Of a stretch of DNA of 64,000 nt, positions 2,895 through 59,948 are shown in pieces. Source of the stretch: Piromyces finnis finn (lineage: Eukaryota; Fungi; Neocallimastigomycota); the NCBI GenBank assembly GCA_002104945.1, contig MCFH01000011.1, positions 558,001-622,000 of the forward strand, written 5' to 3'. The notes below the pieces were generated by a model, which was not told the origin of the DNA, ran no database searches, and saw nothing but the letters and a program-made list of their open reading frames with translations. Within the stretch, counting starts at the first letter, position 1. Each line of letters begins with the position of its first letter. The position numbers and the translations under genes are program-made.

Positions 2895-4716
2895 TTTTTT
2901 AATGATAATTTTCAACCAATTGTTTTTCATTAATTATTCAAAAAAAATAATTATTGAAAATTATCACATGTAAAATGATAATCAGGTGTTATTAATAAAA
3001 GTTTCTTTTAATCTAATCTATTGTTTAGTAATATTCTATATATATATGTATATTATTCATTTATCATATGTTTAAACATAGATCATGTGATATGTGTTAT
3101 TTTTATACAAATATTTTATATCTAAAAATAAAAGATTACTATTTATAATTAAATAAATAGAATTAATAATTAATTATATTTACTATTAACATCAAGCTAT
3201 TATTAGAAATAAAAGATAATCTTACTGATATACATCATCTATAATCTTATTAAATTTTCATCATATATAATTCATAGTTAGTAAAACATCTTTTTTAACT
3301 ATGAATAATTAAATATAAATGTTTTAATTAAATTAAAATTTTATCATTTATAGTTCTATATATATATAAATTTAATATATTAATTTAAATGTAAACATTT
3401 GTATTTTTTAAAAAAAAAAAAAAATACTGATGAGTTTAAAAATAATAAAAAAGTAGAAAAGCTTTCTTTTTATACATCTATAGATATTTAAAAAAGATAT
3501 AGATACGCTGCATGATATTAACTGAAATGAAAAAAGGCATCATTTTATGTTTTATTTTATATATATTTATTAATATAAATTAAAATAGTAATAGTGGTAA
3601 ATAATATTTTAAATTTAAATTCATTAATCTTTATTATAAATGTATTATACTTTTTCATTTATAAATGAAAAGAATTTAATAAGCCAATATAGGATAAGTA
3701 AAAAAAAAAAAAATAATAAGAAAGTTTTTTACACGTAATTCAAAGACTATAAAAAAATGAAATAAAAAAAGACAACAAAGATGAAATAAAAAAACAAAAA
3801 AAAAGGCCACTTTAATTATTTTGATCTTTACCTTTACACATCATTTCTTTAATTATTAACTTTATTTTATATTAATTAAATTAATTAAATATAAAAATAA
3901 TAAATTTTAATTATATATAAAAAATCCAATTCTTTTTATATCTTTATTCCTTTTTTTCTTTTACCTTTTTTTTTTTTTTCTTTCTTTTTCTCACTGAAGA
4001 AAAAAAAAAAGTAGATTTCTTTATTTCTGTAACTTCTAGAAGTAGATATAAATACATAATACTTCACGCTTATTAAATAAAGAAAAATAAAATAATAAAA
4101 AGTATGAAAAAGTTTCTTTATAATGATTAACAATAGTATAATAAAAATGAAATATATAATAATAAAAAATAGTATTCAAAATAAAAAATAAAAAATAAAA
4201 AAGAAAGAAAAAATAGAAAAAGTTATTAATAATCAATTATAAAAGCAAAAATAAAAAAATTAAAGAAATTGAAAATTTTAAAAATATAAAAAAAAGATTA
4301 TAATACATTTTAGTAATTATATAATACTCAACTTGATGGTCTTTATTCAAATTATTAATAAGATATGTTTTTTATTAACTATATATTCTAACGCTAATAT
4401 TATTTTTTATACTATAATTTTTCTTATGCTTTGAAAAAAAATATTCAATAAACTTGGGTTCTCAACTTTAAAATTTTAGTAAATTAATAAAATACAAAAG
4501 TAATAATAAAACTTATTTATACACAAAAAATAAAAAAAGGAGACATTATTTTTAAAAATAGAAAAATAATAATAATAATAAAAAGCATTTAAAATTTATT
4601 TTCAATTCAATATAATTAAATAAATTTCAAATATTAAATAATATAATTATATATAAAATATAAAATATAAAATAGAATTAAAATATTGATATAAAAAAAA
4701 AAAGAAAATAACTAAA

Positions 4717-5427
4717 ATGAAGATTGAAGAAATAAAAGAATATGTTGATAACATTGCAAATTTTGTTAATTTAAAGAGTGTTCTTCCTGATATAGATGGG
4801 TTATTAACAAGTATTATACATAAAGAAATTGAATTTTTGGTCTTTTTAACTATAGTTTACCTTATTACACTTGTTATTAAACAAAGATCAAAATCAATGT
4901 ACAAGTATCTTGTTTCTTTAACTATAGCAGTTATTGCATTATATACCTTTTATATATCTACAATTTTTGATGAAAGTATTAAACAAGGAAAACCAACTGA
5001 AGATGTTATTAAAGGTTTACCACCAATATGTATTTGTATCATTATTAGACTATTCCATATTATTCCACCACTTAAACTTGGTTATTACACCTTACCATTA
5101 TTTATGATTGCCTATTCAATATATTACCACAACTTATTAAGTGGTACACATGTCAAACCAACTAAATCAAAATCAGGCTCCCGTAAACATTCTCATTCAC
5201 ACAACAGCAGTAAAATTAAAGAAAAATCTTTAAAGAATTTCATACGTATTAGTTTATCGTTATTTACCGACTTTATTCATTCATTTATTTTATTCTATGC
5301 TTATACAGTTCTAGTTCTTTTAATATTTATTAATAATAATTATGAATTTACTATCAATTCATTAAACGATAAATCTAGTGCTTATGGAAGAGTTATTAAA
5401 TTCCTTGATTTACCTTTCTTTAAATAA
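4717..5427 (+). CDS. Hypothetical single-exon multi-pass membrane protein (236 aa), no recognised family
   Basis: 711-nt ORF in sequence where chance ORFs are short; about 5 hydrophobic stretches and a basic S/K/H-rich loop (KPTKSKSGSRKHSHSHNSSK). Confidence 0.7.
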   Translation: MKIEEIKEYVDNIANFVNLKSVLPDIDGLLTSIIHKEIEFLVFLTIVYLITLVIKQRSKSMYKYLVSLTIAVIALYTFYISTIFDESIKQGKPTEDVIKGLPPICICIIIRLFHIIPPLKLGYYTLPLFMIAYSIYYHNLLSGTHVKPTKSKSGSRKHSHSHNSSKIKEKSLKNFIRISLSLFTDFIHSFILFYAYTVLVLLIFINNNYEFTINSLNDKSSAYGRVIKFLDLPFFK

Positions 5428-5901
5428 ACTATTTATTAAAATATAAAATGTAATAACTAATAATAAAAAGTATATAGAAATAACGACATTCAACAAAATA
5501 TAAAAAATAATAATAAAAATGAAATATAAATTTTAAAAAAAGAAATAAGAAATGCAAAAGAAAAAGAAAAATTTTAAAAAATATGTAATCATATTTATAC
5601 AAAAATTTAAAAAGAAGAAGAAAAAAAAAAAAAGAAATAATAATTAATACATCTATCATGTATTAAAATTAAAATAATAAAAAATATAATAAATAAAAAA
5701 AATTAAAAAATTAAAATATAAAAAGAATAAAAATAATATAATTTGAAAAAAAAAAGTTTTTAAAATGTATATATATTTTAGTTGATATTCAAGTTTTTTA
5801 AAAATAATATTGAATTTTATTTTAAAAAAAATAAATGATCAGATTATTATTATTATTAGTTAACATAAAAATTTTAAGAAAAACAAAAAAAAAAATATTT
5901 T

Positions 5902-12334
<6,433 letters not shown>

Positions 12335-37122: not shown

Positions 37123-37733
37123 ATGGTCAAATTCCTTAAACCAGGAAAGGTTAGTGATGTTGATGAATGAATGAATGAATTTTTTTTTTAAATTTTAATG
37201 AATATTTATTAAATGAATGTTTTTATGTTATGGTATTTTAATGTGTATGTAAATATAATGTATAGGTTGTTCTCATTTTACAAGGTCGTTTCGCCGGTAA
37301 GAAGGCCGTCATCGTTAAGAACTACGATGAAGGTACCAAGGAACGTCCATACCCACACGCCATTGTTGCTGGTATTGAAAAGTACCCATTAAAGGTTAAC
37401 AAGTCTATGGGACAAAAGCTTGTTGCTAAGCGCTCTAAGGTCAAGCCATTCGTTAAGGTTGTCAACTTCAACCACATCATGCCAACCAGATACAGTCTTG
37501 ATGTCGATTTAAAGCAAAACGTTACTCTTGATGCTTTCAAGGATCCATCCCAAAGAATGCAAACCCGTAAGGTTATCAAGAAGGCTTTAGAAGAAAGGTA
37601 AATTATTAGAAATATAAAATATAATCAATATAATTAAATATTAAATATAAAATATTTTTATTTATTACTAATTACAATAAATAGATACAAGAGCGGTAAG
37701 AACAAGTGGTTCTTCCAAAAGCTTCGTTTCTAA
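37123..37733 (+). CDS. RPL27: 60S ribosomal protein eL27, 3 exons: 37123-37149, 37266-37597, 37685-37733
   Basis: [26 protein letters not shown]...[21 protein letters not shown].../[15 protein letters not shown]. Confidence 0.98.
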
Positions 37734-38501
37734 GTTATTTATGTTCAATAAAAAATTTAAAACGGAATTTATTGTAACTTTTAAAAGAATAAATAAAATG
37801 ACCATAAAAACATAGATTATTTTTTTTGCTACATGAATAAAATTTTTGATTGTTAAATAATTTTTTATATACCAACAGTTATTAATATAAATATATTTAA
37901 GTAATAAAAAACACTGTGTTAATAGACAATAAAATAAAAGGATATAAAACAAAATTTATTGATATCAAATATTAAATATGAATTTTCAGTATTAAATAGT
38001 GGAAATGTAAGAGTAACTATAAATTGTGCTTCAAAGATATTTCAAGCTGGATATAAGTATTTATTAGTAAAAAGTTAGTTTTACTAGTAATACATAATAT
38101 AAATAGAGAATTAGTAATAAAGTAATATATATTTTGAAAGAAATTTTGAGACCAGTAATAGACAATATGGTATAAAATATGTAGAAAATTTATAAATTTA
38201 AAGCTTGCAATATTATAAAGTTGAAAAAGAAGTAAAGTGTAGGTGTTTGAAAAAATGGAGGAATAATTTTGGAATGCTAAATTTTAGAATTTAAAGGTTA
38301 ATTTTATCTTTTTTTACTTAAAATGATAAATTTTGTTCTTTGTTCATATTGGTATAATTATCTTTTTTTTTTTTGTGTTATTTTGTATTAAAATATTGTT
38401 CCTTTAATTTTAAAAAAAATAAGGAATTAAAATAGGTATTTAATATAGTGTTTAATGTAATCAAAAGTAATGTGTTGTATAGATATGGGAAAGGAACATT
38501 A

Positions 38502-40247
38502 TTCAACGATGGTGATTCGTCCTGAATCAATAGAAAATCAGAACAAGAGAGATCCAACATTTTACTTAGCAGGACAACCCATTCCAACTACTGATTGCTA
38601 TACTTATCTTGGTGTTCCATTTGATAAGAATCTGTCCCTTAAACCAGTAATTAAAGCTCTTAATAACAAGGTTTTGAAAGGACTTTTCTCAGTCAGTAAA
38701 TTCTTAAGAAATCCTAATATTCCTATTCCTTTCAAAAAACTAGTACTTAACTCACAAGTGATTAGCAGAGTTTCATACTTTGCACCATTACTTGGATCCA
38801 ACAAAGCTAGGTCTAGGATTGCTCAGAAGCATGTTAACAAAGGAATACGATGGGTTGCCGGAGTTCATAAAGCTGTATCGTTTATATCTTTATACTCTAT
38901 CTCAAAAGATTTGAATATTCCTCCATTGTCAGCCAAATGTGCGTTAGCTCAGGTTAGATGTTTTAACAAATGGAAAAACTCAAATTGTATTATCTCACAC
39001 CTTGTCAATTACATTCCTAAATTTAGAAAATACACGTGGTGCAAATCAAGTAGGACACTTGATAAAAAATTAAAGAAACATGGAGATGTTAAAGCAGTTA
39101 AAAACTTTTATTGGAAAGATCTCAAAGGGAATTCAATCAAAGCGCAATATTATGATGATAATAAATTTATTGAAACTAAAGATTTTATTAAATTATGTTA
39201 TGAGTACCCAGAGTTTGCCTATGGCTTCTACTGGCTATTGAAAGCAAGAAGCGGATACAAGTTGGATGCTAGAGTTGCCAAAGCTGCCAAATTTGTTGAT
39301 CCAGTTTGTCCTAACTACTGTCCATGTTGCAAGTGTGGAGATCAAAGTATTAAACATTGGTTATTAGATTGTCCAACATTTAGAGATATCCGTATTAAAC
39401 ATTATGATTCCATAGTCCAGCTATTAAATTTTTTCAGTCAACGTAATTCCAATAGTCCTATCAATAATAATGAAATTGATAATATCAGTAGAGATAGTAA
39501 TAACATTAATAGTAATAGTAACAATAGTAGTAATAACAATAGTAATAGTAACAATAGTAATAGTAACAATAGTAATAATAACAATAATAGAAATAATAAT
39601 ATTAGTAATGATAGCAATAGTGAAGATAATAATTCTAATTTAGATAGTAATTTAGTTAATGATAGTAATAGTTCTAATAATCCGGTGAATATTAATGTGT
39701 ATGATTATTCTAGTGTGTGCAGTAAAATATTTAAATTCCTTCTTGGGGGAAGAAGTTTTAACAATATCAATTACAATTCAAGGGAATGGAAAGAACTTTG
39801 TAAGCGTCAGATTCAATCTGGTACTAATGAAGGAGCACCATTCTTGACGGTAACCGCGGAACTTCTAACCAAAATCATGCCTTTTGCTATTGGCCAGCAA
39901 TGGTCAATGTTCAAAAGGTTTGAAGCAACATCCAAGAGCGTCAATGCTGAAGAAACAGTAAGACAGGCCAGGAGGGCCAGCGCAACCAATGGAGATCATA
40001 ATTTTGTTCCATGACAAAATTTTGATCTTTGGCTCGGTGTCCCATTGGAAGTCAAATACAATTATTATACTTTAGTATGATAGTGGCTTTCTTACTTTAA
40101 TTAAAATTACTAGAATACATTATACCCAATTTTTATTCATTTGTGTTTATTTAAACATATTTTTTTTATTTTTATTATTTTTAATTATTTATTACATGTA
40201 TTATAATTTTAATTAAATTAATAATAAAGTTTAAAATATTTGATGCC

Positions 40248-40293
<46 letters not shown>
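38502..40293 (+). mobile_element. 5'-truncated LINE, family 1 copy A: RT C-terminal/thumb region, CCHC zinc knuckle, 3' UTR and A43 tail; TSD AAAGGAACATTA at 38490-38501 and 40291-40302
   Basis: Open ORF to 40014 with YTYLGVPF and CPCCKCGDQSIKHWLLDC; poly(A) at 40251-40293; the flanking direct repeat is read directly from the sequence. Confidence 0.92.
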
Positions 40294-40295
<2 letters not shown>

Positions 40296-40513
40296 AACAT
40301 TAATACAGGATCTAATATTAGTGTCAAGTTGAATGAAAACATTAAAGTCTTATATATAGAGTTTATCTTACACATTATCATATCCTAATGATACTTTCCT
40401 TGCATATTTCGTTTAATTTGTTAGGTAGGTTCCAACCTCACAAAGTACAAATTGCAGAGTTCACCAAACTATATACAACTTAAATTCTTTTTATAGTTTA
40501 TTTTATTTATATT

Positions 40514-42433
40514 AAAGGCTTGGAGTTAGCTTAGGTAATAAACGTTGTTGTGGTGGCCTTTTCGCTGATGACATTGTTTTGATTGCTCCTAGTAAGAAGA
40601 ACCTTCAAAAGATGCTCAATCTAGTCCTTGATTGGGCTAATTTAAATGAAATGTCTTTTGGAATAAATAAATGTGCAACTATTGCTGTTAAACCTATCAA
40701 CTTTAATAGATCCCCTAGTTATGTCGACCCAACATTTTACATCGGTATGTACTCGATTCCAAAGGTTTCTTGCTATACTTACAACCCATTCCAACTACTG
40801 ATTGTTATACTTATCTTGGTGTTCCATTTGATAAGAATCTGTCCCTTAAACCAGTTATTAAAGCTCTTAATAACAAGGTTTTGAAAGGACTTTTCTCAGT
40901 CAGTAAATTCTTAAGAAATCCTAATATTCCTATTCCCTTCAAAAAGCTAGTACTTAACTCACAAGTGATTAGCAGAGTTTCATACTTTGCACCATTACTT
41001 GGATCCAACAAAGCTAGGTCTAGGATTGCTCAGAAGCATGTTAACAAAGGAGTACGATGGGTTGCCGGAGTTCATAAAGCTGTATCGTTTATATCTTTAT
41101 ACTCTATCTCAAAAGATTTGAATATTCCTCCATTGTCAGCCAAATGTGCTTTAGCTCAGGTTAGATGTTTTAACAAATGGAAAAACTCAAATTGTATTAT
41201 CTCACACCTTGTCAATTACATTCCTAAATTTAGAAAATACACGTGGTGCAAATCAAGTAGGACACTTGATAAAAAACTAAAGAAACATGGAGATGTTAAA
41301 GCAGATAAAAACTTTTATTGGAAAGATCTCAAAGGGAATTCAATCAAAGCGCAATATTATGATGATAATAAATTTATTGAAACTAAAGATTTTATTAAAT
41401 TATGTTATGAGTACCCAGAGTTTGCCTATGGCTTCTACTGGCTATTGAAAGCAAGAAGCGGATACAAGTTGGATGCTAGAGTTGCCAAAGCTGCTAAATT
41501 TGTTGATCCAGTTTGTCCTAACTACTGTCCATGTTGCAAGTGTGGAGATCAAAGTATTAAACATTGGTTATTAGATTGTCCAACATTTAGAGATATCCGT
41601 ATTAAACATTATGATTCTATAGTCCATTTATTAAATTTTTTCAGTCAACGTAATTCCAATAGTCCTATCAATAATAATGAAAATGTTAATATCAGCAGAG
41701 ATAGCAATAACAGTAATAGTTATAGTAATAATATTAATAATAACAATAGTAATAATAACAATAGTAGTAATAGAAATAATAATATTAGTAATGATAGCAA
41801 TAGTGATGATAATAATTCTAATTTAGATAGTAATTTAGTTGATGATAGTAATAGTTCTAATAATCCGGTGAATATTAATGTGTATGATTATTCTAGTGTG
41901 TGCAGTAAAATATTTAAATTCCTTCTTGGGGGAAGAAGTTTTAACAATATTAATTACAATTCAAGGGAATGGAAAGAACTTTGTAAGCGTCAGATTCAAT
42001 CTGGTACTAACGAAGGAACACCATTCTTGATGGTAACCGCGGAACTTCTAACCAAAATCATGCCTTTTGCTATTGGTCAGCAATGGTCAATGTTCAAAAG
42101 GTTTGAAGCAACATCCAAGAGCGTCAATGCTGAAGAAACAGTAAGACAGGCCAGGAGGGCCAGCGCAACCAATGGAGATCATAATTTTGTTCCATGACAA
42201 AATTTTGATTTTTGGCTCGGTGTCCCATTGGAAGTCAAATACAATTATTATACTTTAGTATAATAGTGGCTTTCTTACTTTAATTAAAATTACTAGAATA
42301 CATTATACCCAATTTTTATTCATTTGTGTTTATTTAAACATATTTTTTTTATTTTTATTTTTATTTTTAATTTTTTATTACATGTATTATAATTTTAATT
42401 AAATTAATAATAAAGTTTAAAATATTTGATGCC

Positions 42434-42467
<34 letters not shown>

Positions 42468-44072
42468 CTTGCTATACTTATCTTGGAATCCCATTCGACG
42501 AAGATCTTTCTTTGACTCCTATTCTGTCTAATATGTACAAAAAAGTTCAGAAATCTTTATTCTCTTTTAAGAACTTCCTCAACAACAATTGTGTTCCTAT
42601 TGGTTTAAAAAACATAGTAATTCATTCTTATATTTTAAGCAAAGTCTCTTATTATGCTCCTTTGCTTGGTTCCAACAAAAATAGAACTAGAAGAGTCCAA
42701 TCTCTTATCAATACTGCTGTTTTATGGAGTGTCAATAGCTTTCACAATAAAAGTTTTAATAACAAAGATTTTGTTTTTGAACGAAATTCATTTATTAGTC
42801 TGTATGCTCTTACAAGAGATATGAAGATTCCTACCCTTTCAGGTATTTGTGATGCGCAACAAGTGAAATGCTTTGTTAAATGGAGAAAATCAAATTGTAT
42901 AATTAAAGATCTCGTCCGATCTATTCCTCCCATGTCTCATTACTCTTGGGCCAAAGAATCTTGTTCACTACATAAGAAGCTTATGAAAATAAATATTAAA
43001 AGTACTAAAGATATTAGAGAATATTATTGGAATAATAGTAGCCTAAATAATGGAAGTAAAGCCCTCAGATATACTAACAACAAATTCCTTAATTCAAATC
43101 GCCTAATGCATATCGGTCTCAACAAACCTCACTTAAATTTAGGAATTACCTGGATTATTCGTATTCGATGCGGTTATGAAAATATTACCCGAATTGCTAT
43201 TGCCAGTAATAGAGTTACTCCTGACTGCCCTCGTGTCTGTCCATGTTGCGGATATGACGAACAATCTTTTTACCATTGGATATTAGAATGTTCTGCATTC
43301 TCTGAATACAGAGCTTCTTCACTTAGCTTTCTTGACGATCTTTTTACCCTTTTTTACAATAAATATAAGAATCAATTCATCACATACTTACTCCCCGAAA
43401 CGGAAGTAAGAAAAATAATTTATAACTATATTTTTACGTTCCTTCTTGGTGGAACTTTAGCTTATGATGAGCTACAAATCGATAAGGCGGAACAAAGACA
43501 TTTGAATGAACAGCTTTACAGTTCATCGGGGTCTCATGTTCCATATGTAGAGGGTCTCGCGGCTTTTCTTACTAAAACAATCCCTATCATTAGTAGCTCT
43601 ATGAAGCTATTTTTTGATAGGTTTAGTAAGACACCTAACGTAATCAAGAGCGCCGACGTCGTACCGATATGGCAAAGGAACATTTCCAATGTTCCGTACA
43701 CAGGGTTCAATGTTAGTATTTCCTCAAATTCGAATGAAAACATTATGAACTCATGGGAGAGTTTAGTGGACACCACACTATCATACCTGATGTTACTTCT
43801 TTTTTTTATTTCATTTAATTTATTAGGTAGGGACCAATCCCACACAGTACAAATTGCAGAGTTCATTGAACTTTTATGCAACTTAAATAATTATTTTATA
43901 TTATTTTATATTTATATTTTTATTTATATATATTTTATTATTTTTATTTATTATTTATTATATCAATATCAATATGTATTATCACCTAATGTTATGTAAT
44001 ATCTCAAATTAAATAAATAAATAAAAGATGTGTATTCTCTTCCTAGTCTAAAAAAAAAAAAAAAAAAAAAAA
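40514..44072 (+). mobile_element. 5'-truncated LINE, family 2, interrupted by family 1 copy B; A23 tail at 44050-44072; probable TSD TTTATTTATATT at 40502-40513 and 44073-44084
   Basis: GVSLGNKRCCGGLFADDIV (RT catalytic motif)...GINKCA...SCYTY/LGIPF...CPCCGYDEQSFYHWILEC. Removing copy B and one TSD restores a continuous 595-codon frame (40516-40781 plus 42481-43999). Confidence 0.9.
40782..42465 (+). mobile_element. 5'-truncated LINE, family 1 copy B with A29 tail; TSD TTCTTGCTATACTTA at 40767-40781 and 42466-42480
   Basis: Near-identical to copy A; exact 15-bp flanking direct repeat; open ORF to 42197. Confidence 0.93.
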
Positions 44073-44773
44073 TTTATTTATATTTTAATTATCTTTATTA
44101 GTATGAATTCTCTTCAATTTCAAAAAAAAAAATAATTTTTTTTTGAAATTTTATTTTTAATGATACCGAGGCTTCTCAAAGCAGAAAGTCATTTTTTTTT
44201 TAATCAGCAAGTAGTATATTATAATTATAAATAAACAACTGCTTAAGAAGATAAAGTATAATAATAATATTAATTTTATTAGAATACACCATACTTTTAA
44301 TATATGCAATGCAATATTAAGCAACTCATTATATCTATATCTATTTTTATTTATATATATTTTATTATTTTTATTTATTATTTATTATATCAATATCAAT
44401 ATGTATTATCACCTAATGTTATGTAATATCTCAAATTAAATAAATAAATAAAAGATGTGTATTCTCTTCCTAGTCTAAAAAAAAAAAAAAAAAAAAAAAA
44501 ATTTATTTATATTTTAATTATCTTTATTAGTATGAATTCTCTTCAATTTCAAAAAAAAAAATAATTTTTTTTTGAAATTTTATTTTTAATGATACCGAGG
44601 CTTCTCAAAGCAGAAAGTCATTTTTTTTTTAATCAGCAAGTAGTATATTATAATTATAAATAAACAACTGCTTAAGAAGATAAAGTATAATAATAATATT
44701 AATTTTATTAGAATACACCATACTTTTAATATATGCAATGCAATATTAAGCAAGTCATTATATCTATATCTAT
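43914..44773. repeat. Tandem direct duplication, period about 427 bp, spanning the LINE 3' ends and unique flank
   Basis: atcacctaat at 43981 and 44408; gataccgaggcttctcaaagc occurs twice. The copies differ by poly(A) length (23 vs 25) and one substitution (gcaactc/gcaagtc). Confidence 0.9.
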
Positions 44774-45839
44774 ATTTATTTTATTTTAGTTTAAGCAGAG
44801 CTAATAAAATGAGAAAAAGTTTTTATTTATTTTATTTTCTTTATGTATCATGTATCTTATACAATATTAATATAGTAATAAAAATGTATATTTGAAAAAT
44901 AGTGTAATGTTAAACAATTTATTTTATTATTAAGTATAAAAAGTTTACATATTTAAACTTATTTCATATTTTTAATTATTAATATGTAATTATATAAAAT
45001 TTATAATAGTTATTATTCTTTAATTTCATTAAACATAAATATAAAATGAAAAAATATTTGTTAATTATTTGGAAAACAATTGGAAAGAAATTATATTAAA
45101 TATAAAAGATGAAATAAAATTTACATTTCAAATTTTATATATTTTTAGCTTTTGTCTAACTATTTTTATTATTATTATTTTTGCATGCATGAGATATAAA
45201 TGTTTAATGAAATAAAGTTTGATTATTATTTTAATTAACAATTCTATAGGTATCATTTTGAAAAATAAACAACATTTATTTTTCATAATTGAAATAAGAA
45301 TAAGATTTTAAGGTTTTATCATTTTAATATTAAAAATAAATTAAATAACAAAATATTATAAAATATATAGGTAATTACATATATAAAAGTCCATACATAA
45401 TTAGCCATATCCATCAATATTTAACTATTAATTCGAAAATTTCAATTTATTCTTTTTTTTTTTTTTAATCCTTTGTAGCTTTGTAGAATAAAAGAAAACA
45501 AAAAGTATTTAAAAATTCATGTAAACTTGAAAAATATTATAAAAATAATTGATATTCTATTATATTTTGATAACAATAATAATAAAAAAAATCCACACTT
45601 AATTTTTTTTATAACAAATAACCTTTTTAATTAATATGCGCATTTAAATATATAAAAAAGTTAAATATAATACAACAACATAATAATAAAAATTTTGTTA
45701 TTATTACATTAAATCTATATAGAACAAAGAAAATAATATAGAAAAATAATATTTTTGTATGATTCCAAATAAATAGCAATTAGAAAATTTTGTAATATAA
45801 ATAAAACGAACAACATAAACATTTATACAATCATTAAAT

Positions 45840-51070
<5,231 letters not shown>

Positions 51071-57700: not shown

Positions 57701-59948
<2,248 letters not shown>

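Follow-up and report, generated by a model that had tools for sequence, protein, structure and literature searches.

A nest of co-oriented LINEs behind RPL27 in Piromyces finnis: possible position-specific integration past the 3' ends of host genes

Why should four copies of long interspersed nuclear elements (LINEs), drawn from two related families, lie inside one another and all on the + strand just behind a ribosomal protein gene of an anaerobic gut fungus? Such a nest follows RPL27 in the window analysed here, a stretch of 64 kb of Piromyces finnis DNA at 558-622 kb of contig MCFH01000011.1; the families are called F1 and F2 below. An earlier note on this DNA, made from its letters, proposed that these LINEs target resident LINEs through chromatin or RNA/DNA homology rather than through a fixed sequence. 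Drawing on genome-wide searches that took in the 56.46-Mb, 232-contig assembly, we arrive at a different answer, to which we give somewhat better than even confidence: F1 and F2 appear to integrate, in a specific orientation, into a zone behind apparently highly expressed host genes, and nesting would be a side effect of that habit.

The nest resolves into the following pieces. Positions within F1 and F2 refer to natural full-length copies, not to consensus sequences (F1, L031:2781-8477, 5.7 kb; F2, L064:2781-8563, 5.8 kb; L numbers denote individual loci).

38434-38501, + strand: old F2, front piece (approximately F2 5330-5392, ~75% identity), ending in the upstream target-site duplication (TSD) of copy A at 38490-38501
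38502-40293, + strand: F1 copy A, 5'-truncated (F1 3914-5697), with a 43-nt poly(A) at 40251-40293
40294-40513, + strand: old F2, middle piece (F2 5408-5626, 74-76% identity), from the copy A downstream TSD to the probable upstream TSD of the young F2 (40502-40513)
40514-40781, + strand: young F2, first piece (F2 ~3904-4188), the end of the reverse transcriptase (RT) domain with its FADD box (Pfam RVT_1, E=5e-6), ending with the copy B upstream TSD at 40767-40781
40782-42465, + strand: F1 copy B, 5'-truncated (F1 3986-5691), with a 29-nt poly(A) at 42437-42465
42466-44072, + strand: young F2, second piece (F2 4174-5783, 98.9%), opening with the copy B downstream TSD and closing with a poly(A) at 44050-44072
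44073-44132, + strand: old F2 tail, comprising the probable downstream TSD of the young F2 (44073-44084), then the terminal part of the old 3' untranslated region (UTR; ATTCTCTTC motif) and A11

The old F2 is a decayed 3' fragment of ~0.4 kb with 74-76% identity, now in three parts (38434-38501, 40294-40515 and 44073-44132). Its front piece was recognised from a 49-nt BLAST match (38453-38500) and carried by eye to ~38434 against 43600-43680. The earlier note had begun this element at 38000, which proved too far upstream: homology starts at ~38434-38453, and beyond that point sensitive BLAST and nhmmer searches give low-complexity matches alone. Copy A, 100% identical to the full-length F1 in L031, entered the old F2 ~68 bp behind its front edge and is flanked by AAAGGAACATTA at 38490 and 40291. 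The insertion itself had been read correctly; its TSD, previously given as 12 bp, is better stated as 9-12 bp because the first three A merge with the poly(A) tail.

Copy B is 96.5-97.8% identical to the L031 F1 copy, and its initial 121 bp are shared at 100% by at least 30 other copies. It splits the young F2 266 bp behind the front edge of that element, as had been claimed: an exact 15-bp TSD, TTCTTGCTATACTTA, occurs at 40767 and 42466, and the F2 reading frame broken by copy B picks up again exactly beyond it. The young F2 starts at 40514/6, ~290 bp inside the old F2 and within its 3' UTR, again in agreement with the earlier description; its 12-bp TSD, TTTATTTATATT at 40502 and 44073, is still only probable, given the AT-richness of the sequence and the alignments of other F2 copies, which extend as much as 17 nt farther in the 5' direction. 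All four copies do lie on the + strand. As a separate observation, the copy B target in F2 (…TGCTATACTTA) is homologous to a point 24 nt inside copy B's own 5' end (…TGTTATACTTATCTTGG; window 40767-40830), which may be a coincidence or may reflect microhomology used in joining the 5' end.

Could a structure of this kind result from misassembly, or belong to a segment that has been duplicated? A tandem duplication does abut the nest:

43909-44778, + strand: tandem duplication of two units of ~427 bp (43909-44335 and 44336-44778), ~99.5% identical

Each unit starts in the young F2, of which it takes in the final 141 bp, and continues through the poly(A) of that copy and the tail of the old F2 into 203 bp of flank; the units differ in one substitution and in poly(A) length, and the breakpoint lies in similar AT-rich words (TATATCTAT...). 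The duplication is either a post-insertion event or an assembly stutter. Other LINE-bearing segments are also duplicated across contigs: L036-L038 have a single junction in common, and L064 (contig C151) and L065 (C20) share at least 9.9 kb at 98% identity, a repeat that also includes L037 (C36) and thus spans two or three contigs at least. Within this last segment lie a sugar-transporter gene, its frame broken in L064, and two LINEs, one a full-length F2 and the other a truncated F1; whether it reflects segmental duplication or redundancy of the assembly, the segment swells raw nest counts. An artefactual origin of the RPL27 nest is nevertheless extremely improbable. TSDs and poly(A) tails account for every break, the F2 frame resumes exactly past copy B, and like architecture recurs at many independent loci. 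Moreover, both nest junctions tested occur only once in the 56-Mb genome, so the nest is not a copied composite, and that origin can be ruled out.

Is the nest, then, a local accident? To place it in context, the 30 best-scoring 3' ends of each family were taken with 1.5-kb flanks (L001-L030 and L034-L063), duplicated junctions were taken out (L036-L038; L051/L059), and 57 independent young copies were retained, with a neighbour defined as F1 or F2 DNA lying no more than 300 bp downstream of the poly(A). Neighbours were co-oriented for 35 copies, opposite for 4 and absent for 18 (same versus opposite, p=3e-7). The flank scoring that the earlier note had suggested, applied to these 57 copies, places ~26 of them directly in co-oriented F1/F2, the neighbour abutting the tail, whereas ~3.8% would be expected from genome share (p~1e-22); 18 sit in plain AT-rich, non-LINE DNA. 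Cross-family pairs had the same orientation in 16 cases and the opposite one in 1, and 5'-truncated, promoter-less copies shared the orientation of their resident at a ratio of ~12:1. Of the four opposite neighbours, three stand tail-to-tail, as expected if two stacks meet between convergent genes. TSDs measured 11-14 bp at L008, L011, L019, L049 and L062, and 13 bp at the full-length copies L031, L064 and L067; where both flanks are visible with ordinary TSDs, the nested copies are separate events of target-primed reverse transcription (TPRT). Taken together, these results support co-oriented LINE-in-LINE insertion as a genome-wide habit rather than a local accident. Inverted-repeat instability was considered as a source of the co-orientation and rejected, since the divergence within cross-family pairs is too great for hairpins, and yet these pairs still stand at 16:1.

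A habit of this kind might be a by-product of reverse transcription, either because a poly(A)-dependent, L1-like enzyme is primed best on resident LINEs, by their poly(A) tails and their A-rich sense strand, as in Alu/L1 tail insertions, or because the RT switches templates, leaving one LINE RNA for the poly(A) end of a second, and a single event then inserts two copies. Several details point this way: A occupies position -1 in 13 of 20 mapped target sites, L067 entered the tail of its resident (TSD TGTTGTTAAAAAA), L016 and L055 begin right after the poly(A) of another copy, and L060 has no detectable TSD. At L066, in addition, an F2 copy truncated at 3237 carries at its 5' end a co-oriented 79-bp F2 3' piece (L066:5977-6055; F2 5292-5370, 98.7%), with no matching continuation of the piece found past the poly(A); this looks like a template switch in reverse transcription. 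However, window copies A and B, together with L031, L033-T, L062 and L064, have LINE DNA on both sides and TSDs that are not A-rich, and hence represent separate insertions. The genome is 82% A+T, and A-runs are far commoner outside LINEs, so that priming should favour intergenic DNA and not LINE fronts. We consider this explanation very improbable.

The position at which newcomers enter their residents is more telling. Wherever both newcomer flanks are visible, the distance from the resident front edge is 0-390 bp, even in residents of 4.7-5.7 kb: to the ~68 bp (copy A), 266 bp (copy B) and ~290 bp (young F2) of the window can be added 13 bp at L031, 66 at L033, ~70 at L032, ~10 at L064, ~105 at L062, ~0 at L060 and ~390 at L067. 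Seven of the residents reach 1.75 kb or more, and for these uniform placement has a combined p of 2.5e-8 by Fisher's method. Some newcomers lie 53-196 bp upstream of the resident front edge, outside LINE DNA (L024, L025, L040 and L049). Because this crowding persists while a stack grows, the determinant of position should be upstream of the stack.

Target sequence contributes little. The TSD sequences are all different, including the three in the window, and among 20 target sites mapped onto the references the sole common feature is the A at position -1, in 13 of the 20 (35-column count), which agrees with the earlier reading that the sites have no clear consensus. An endonuclease motif was accordingly dropped as a determinant, the same count yielding that A alone. 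An apparent GC-rich target context is the composition of the LINEs themselves, as can be seen from the 18 targets outside LINEs, where the DNA is plainly AT-rich. One site in the 124-bp 5' monomers that head full-length elements, GGGGG/(G)TCTACTCATGCTCAT, was used repeatedly (the 3' junctions of L005, L013 and L020, and L032 at 2607-2760). It was also observed that this reuse leaves an identical 15-16-bp duplication between stacked copies; alternatively, some partial monomers of 65-70 nt may have arisen through the RT re-copying the leader.

These data bear directly on the idea that the integration complex recognises resident LINEs, whether via their chromatin, their transcription (for example, from a 5' monomer promoter) or RNA/DNA homology, with the neighbouring gene being incidental; recognition of this sort has been proposed for self-nesting elements such as Zepp and Cnl1. 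Co-oriented LINE neighbours are indeed ~10 times more frequent than the ~4% expectation, and the monomer region, 124 bp or ~3% of F1 DNA, receives 8-11 of the 35 insertions, with the one site above reused; F1 and F2 monomers, being 99% identical, would let homology act across families there, and copy B sits where F2 is homologous to a point near its own 5' end. The monomer insertions also fit the front-edge rule, however, since monomers form the front of full-length residents, and truncated residents that have neither promoter nor monomer are struck equally near their front edge (window copy B; L060, L062 and L064). Recognition of LINEs would not explain why insertions fail to spread over residents of 4.7-5.7 kb, why newcomers lie just upstream of the front edge, or why 18 of the 57 young copies inserted outside LINE DNA, and chromatin marks alone would leave orientation unexplained. 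Nesting between families is no less strict than nesting within one, even with F1 and F2 open reading frames (ORFs) that are too diverged to hybridise, which argues against homology-guided targeting. Thus, the co-oriented habit proposed in the earlier note holds (35 versus 4), as does the lack of a fixed sequence, whereas its attribution to homology or to recognition of LINEs is not supported, the 16:1 cross-family ratio, the copies in AT-rich DNA and the front-edge crowding all speaking against it. We regard targeting directed by LINEs as unlikely.

If the determinant is upstream, what lies there? In the window it is RPL27, whose adjacency to the stack had already been recognised and is borne out by Pfam:

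37266-37733, + strand: RPL27 gene, 3' part, two exons and a short intron, with the stop codon TAA at 37731-37733 (Pfam Ribosomal_L27e, E=2e-26)
37734-38433, no strand: RPL27 3' flank, AT-rich (17.6% GC), with several AATAAA; a 700-bp gap from stop codon to stack front, in which no LINE homology and no tRNA or Rfam RNA was detected
46124-47345, + strand: next gene downstream, a host gene with RhoGAP-domain exons

The stack therefore sits in a tandem, head-to-tail intergenic region and has the orientation of both flanking genes. Across the sample, all eight visible stack fronts begin 455-1047 bp past the end of a co-oriented ORF, the closest one to their 5' side (one-sided p=0.004). The upstream ORFs encode RPL27, glutamine synthetase III, succinyl-CoA synthetase beta, a sugar transporter, Rab GDI, glutamate dehydrogenase, an ankyrin-repeat protein and one product without a family match. 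Exon GC is 0.32-0.45 in the upstream genes versus 0.25-0.33 in ORFs beyond the stack rear (Mann-Whitney p=0.002). RPL27, at 0.43, exceeds every other ORF of the window in exon GC (ORF GC table), and the sole F1/F2 LINEs of the 64 kb sit behind it. High exon GC is taken here as a proxy for high expression, by which these upstream genes would be busy ones.

A tRNA or other small RNA gene was rejected as the anchor: ARAGORN and Rfam searches of the window, and of the DNA ahead of the stack fronts, found no tRNA or Rfam RNA, and none lies between gene and stack. A tRNA lies within 1.5 kb of only 1 of 60 sampled 3' ends, namely a tRNA-Leu(CAA) on the same strand (L042:2817-2900, which equals L067:9099-9181), and this gene lies past the 3' end of a full-length F2, ~530 bp beyond its poly(A), that is, not on the stack-front side.

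Position behind genes might instead reflect survivorship only, with near-random integration followed, in a compact haploid genome, by persistence of those copies that fell in gene 3' flanks, between convergent genes or in dead LINEs. Such a filter fits the near absence of a target consensus, the lack of host-exon insertions (0 of 57 copies) and the mostly convergent genes past the stack rear (~8 versus 2, one of them Pfam-verified). It does not explain orientation, given that promoter-less, truncated copies are ~12:1 co-oriented, nor crowding on the gene side of a 5.7-kb resident that is equally 'dead' throughout, and it does not predict higher exon GC upstream than downstream. The 99-100% identity of many copies also leaves little time for anything except strong selection. 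Selection alone is hard to uphold against the asymmetry in GC combined with the front-edge rule and the co-oriented state of promoter-less, truncated copies, and we consider it distinctly unlikely.

The reading that we favour, in which integration is directed past host-gene ends, can be laid out as a sequence of steps. F1 and F2, as active families, would enter by ordinary TPRT, leaving TSDs of 11-16 bp and poly(A) tails, and their choice of site would be independent of DNA sequence and of homology to other LINEs. The landing zone would lie downstream of an apparently highly expressed host gene, at ~0.45-1.3 kb from its stop codon, with the 5' end of the element toward the gene and its orientation fixed. 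With the anchor staying in place, each newcomer would enter the gene-side front of the resident LINE, and older copies would be split or pushed farther from the gene, yielding a co-oriented, cross-family stack that is nested or head-to-tail. In the window, RPL27 would serve as the anchor. The old F2 would have entered ~700 bp beyond its stop codon, the young F2 ~290 bp into the old F2, and copy B 266 bp into the young F2; copy A would have entered ~68 bp into the old F2, at a point in the order, relative to the young F2 and copy B, that the model leaves free. Percent identity does not date copy A against copy B, because the two come from different young subfamilies. What is recognised would be the gene 3' end, possibly through the machinery of termination and 3' processing, or through a chromatin or DNA state that it creates (e.g., R-loops).

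Several points weigh against this proposal. The expression of the upstream genes is judged from gene identity and exon GC, not from measurement, and the ankyrin-repeat gene (GC 0.26), the GDI gene and the ORF that has no family match would not readily be called busy. The gene anchor is based on eight loci only, the zone is broad (~0.8 kb), and the sample consists of top scorers rather than a random draw. The resident front edge is out of view in 14 of the 35 co-oriented cases, where insertions farther from that edge are possible. No tethering domain was identified, the first ~125 residues of F1 having no match in Pfam, a PDB sequence search or the ESM Atlas. Most seriously, the ORFs beyond the stack rear are mostly convergent, as given above, and were LINE survival confined to the space between convergent genes, a LINE in either orientation would always have, on its 5' side, a gene pointing at it. 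A tandem context, which separates targeting from such survival, is found in the window only, and perhaps at L018; the RPL27 locus is thus informative on the anchor, as one case.

What kind of elements are these? By their domains and hallmarks, F1 and F2 are classified here as apurinic/apyrimidinic endonuclease (APE)-type, L1-like, poly(A)-tailed LINEs of the L1/Tx1 group; the poly(A) tail, the variable 5' truncation and the TSDs varying in sequence all fit. F1 opens with at least one 124-bp 5' monomer, followed by a leader of 0.6 kb, one ORF of 1507 aa (L031:3683-8206) and the poly(A) tail. The ORF encodes, in order, an N-terminal domain of ~110 residues, a Q-/S-/N-rich linker, the endonuclease, the RT and a CCHC motif; close to the C terminus there is another run rich in N and S. 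The endonuclease is of APE type (Pfam Exo_endo_phos, E=1.9e-7, 31.5 bits against a cut-off of 24.5, profile 1-225, residues ~241-452), and the RT matches RVT_1 at E=7e-36, its best solved relative being human L1 ORF2p (E=2e-33), with R2 behind (E=3e-18). A zf-RVT match is weak (E=0.002-0.02, below cut-off), and a CCHC-like motif is visible in the translation. The full-length L031 copy has no separate ORF1 upstream of ORF2, a feature that is not universal in the L1/Tx1 group. Single-sequence AlphaFold gives the N-terminal ~110 residues a ferredoxin/RRM-like fold with low confidence (predicted local distance difference test score of 61) and weak Foldseek matches, and an ORF1-like RNA-binding module may therefore be fused to the N terminus of the F1 ORF.

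The two families are only 40-55% identical in protein over the part present in the window. Their 124-bp 5' monomers are 99% identical (L031:2792-3040 versus L064:2791-2951, also L067:2796-2959), and the count of whole and partial monomers differs among copies; comparison of these regions suggests that a promoter module was recently exchanged between F1 and F2. A first-look search of the genome returned candidate counts of 1121 F1 3' ends, 409 F1 5' ends and 353 F2 3' ends, for a rough genome share of 7-8% for the two families together, and many copies are mutually 99-100% identical. The rest of the 64 kb contains no F1/F2-like DNA. The earlier statement that the window holds no other recognisable transposable element thus stands for F1/F2-like DNA, at which the search was aimed and which is the only class screened.

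The composition of the window itself is extreme, at ~18% GC with the exception of 38-44 kb (29-31%). Three blocks of 0.5-0.8 kb fall to 0-6% GC (2473-2970, 8624-9383 and 57704-58483); several frames are open in them simultaneously, which marks them as pure A/T low-complexity tracts.

How does such a system compare with those already known? Retrotransposon survival in compact genomes depends on harmless landing sites, and known solutions include sequence-specific targets, Pol III genes (TRE, Ty1 and Ty3), heterochromatin or telomeres, and the promoters of genes transcribed by RNA polymerase II (Pol II; Tf1). Sequence-specific LINEs such as Tx1L in Tx1D, and R1 and R2 in ribosomal DNA, enter another repeat again and again in one orientation, as F1 and F2 do, but F1 and F2 have no fixed target sequence. 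Human L1 and Alu, with a poly(A)-dependent APE-type machinery and a weak A/T preference at the nick site, insert into the A-rich tails of resident repeats and form co-oriented head-to-tail pairs; in contrast, most resolvable F1/F2 targets are the front few hundred bp of residents, whatever their sequence, and not A-rich tails.

Nested or stacked clusters of poly(A)-tailed LINEs, in place of dispersed single copies, are found in two further systems. Zepp of Chlorella and Coccomyxa forms one nested cluster per chromosome, at presumed centromeres or termini (PMC3446292), and Cnl1 of Cryptococcus forms subtelomeric arrays (bioRxiv 10.1101/2021.08.11.455996). F1 and F2 are likewise nested and co-oriented, but their stacks are small, very many and contig-internal on dozens of contigs, where they lie by ordinary host genes; moreover, two diverged families share the stacks, and one third of young copies lie outside LINEs. 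In the open-access literature, we found no description of LINEs from Neocallimastigomycota, nor of gene-end targeting by a non-LTR element.

The nearest mechanism is that of TRE3 and TRE5 in Dictyostelium, which integrate position-specifically by tRNA genes, TRE3 within windows such as 14-228 bp downstream (PMC5006619). These, too, are LINEs with APE, RT and zinc finger in a compact, very AT-rich genome; their target is set by position relative to a transcription unit and not by sequence, and the same places are reused, which has been read as a safe-site strategy. The differences are that the proposed anchor of F1 and F2 is a protein-coding Pol II gene, that their zone is farther away and broader (~0.45-1.3 kb past the stop codon), that TREs have two ORFs and F1 one, and that F1 and F2 are not at a fixed short distance from tRNA genes, the single locus with one having it on the wrong side. 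Tentatively, and at a little less than even confidence, we propose that an L1-like, APE-type LINE lineage of anaerobic gut fungi evolved orientation-specific integration past the 3' ends of busy Pol II genes, tethered to the termination/3'-processing machinery or to its footprint on DNA or chromatin, as a Pol II counterpart of TRE targeting to tRNA genes, with nests as a by-product. Were this true, the harmless-site problem would have an added solution, in which a LINE finds busy protein-coding genes by their downstream end and orients itself accordingly, and there would be a handle on what marks the Pol II termination zone on DNA. The model would also account for the 'self-targeting' look of LINE nests here and bears on the annotation of repeat-rich, AT-rich fungal assemblies. 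The RPL27 nest may thus be an ordinary instance, in this genome, of position-specific LINE targeting of a possibly new type, with the TREs as its closest known parallel.

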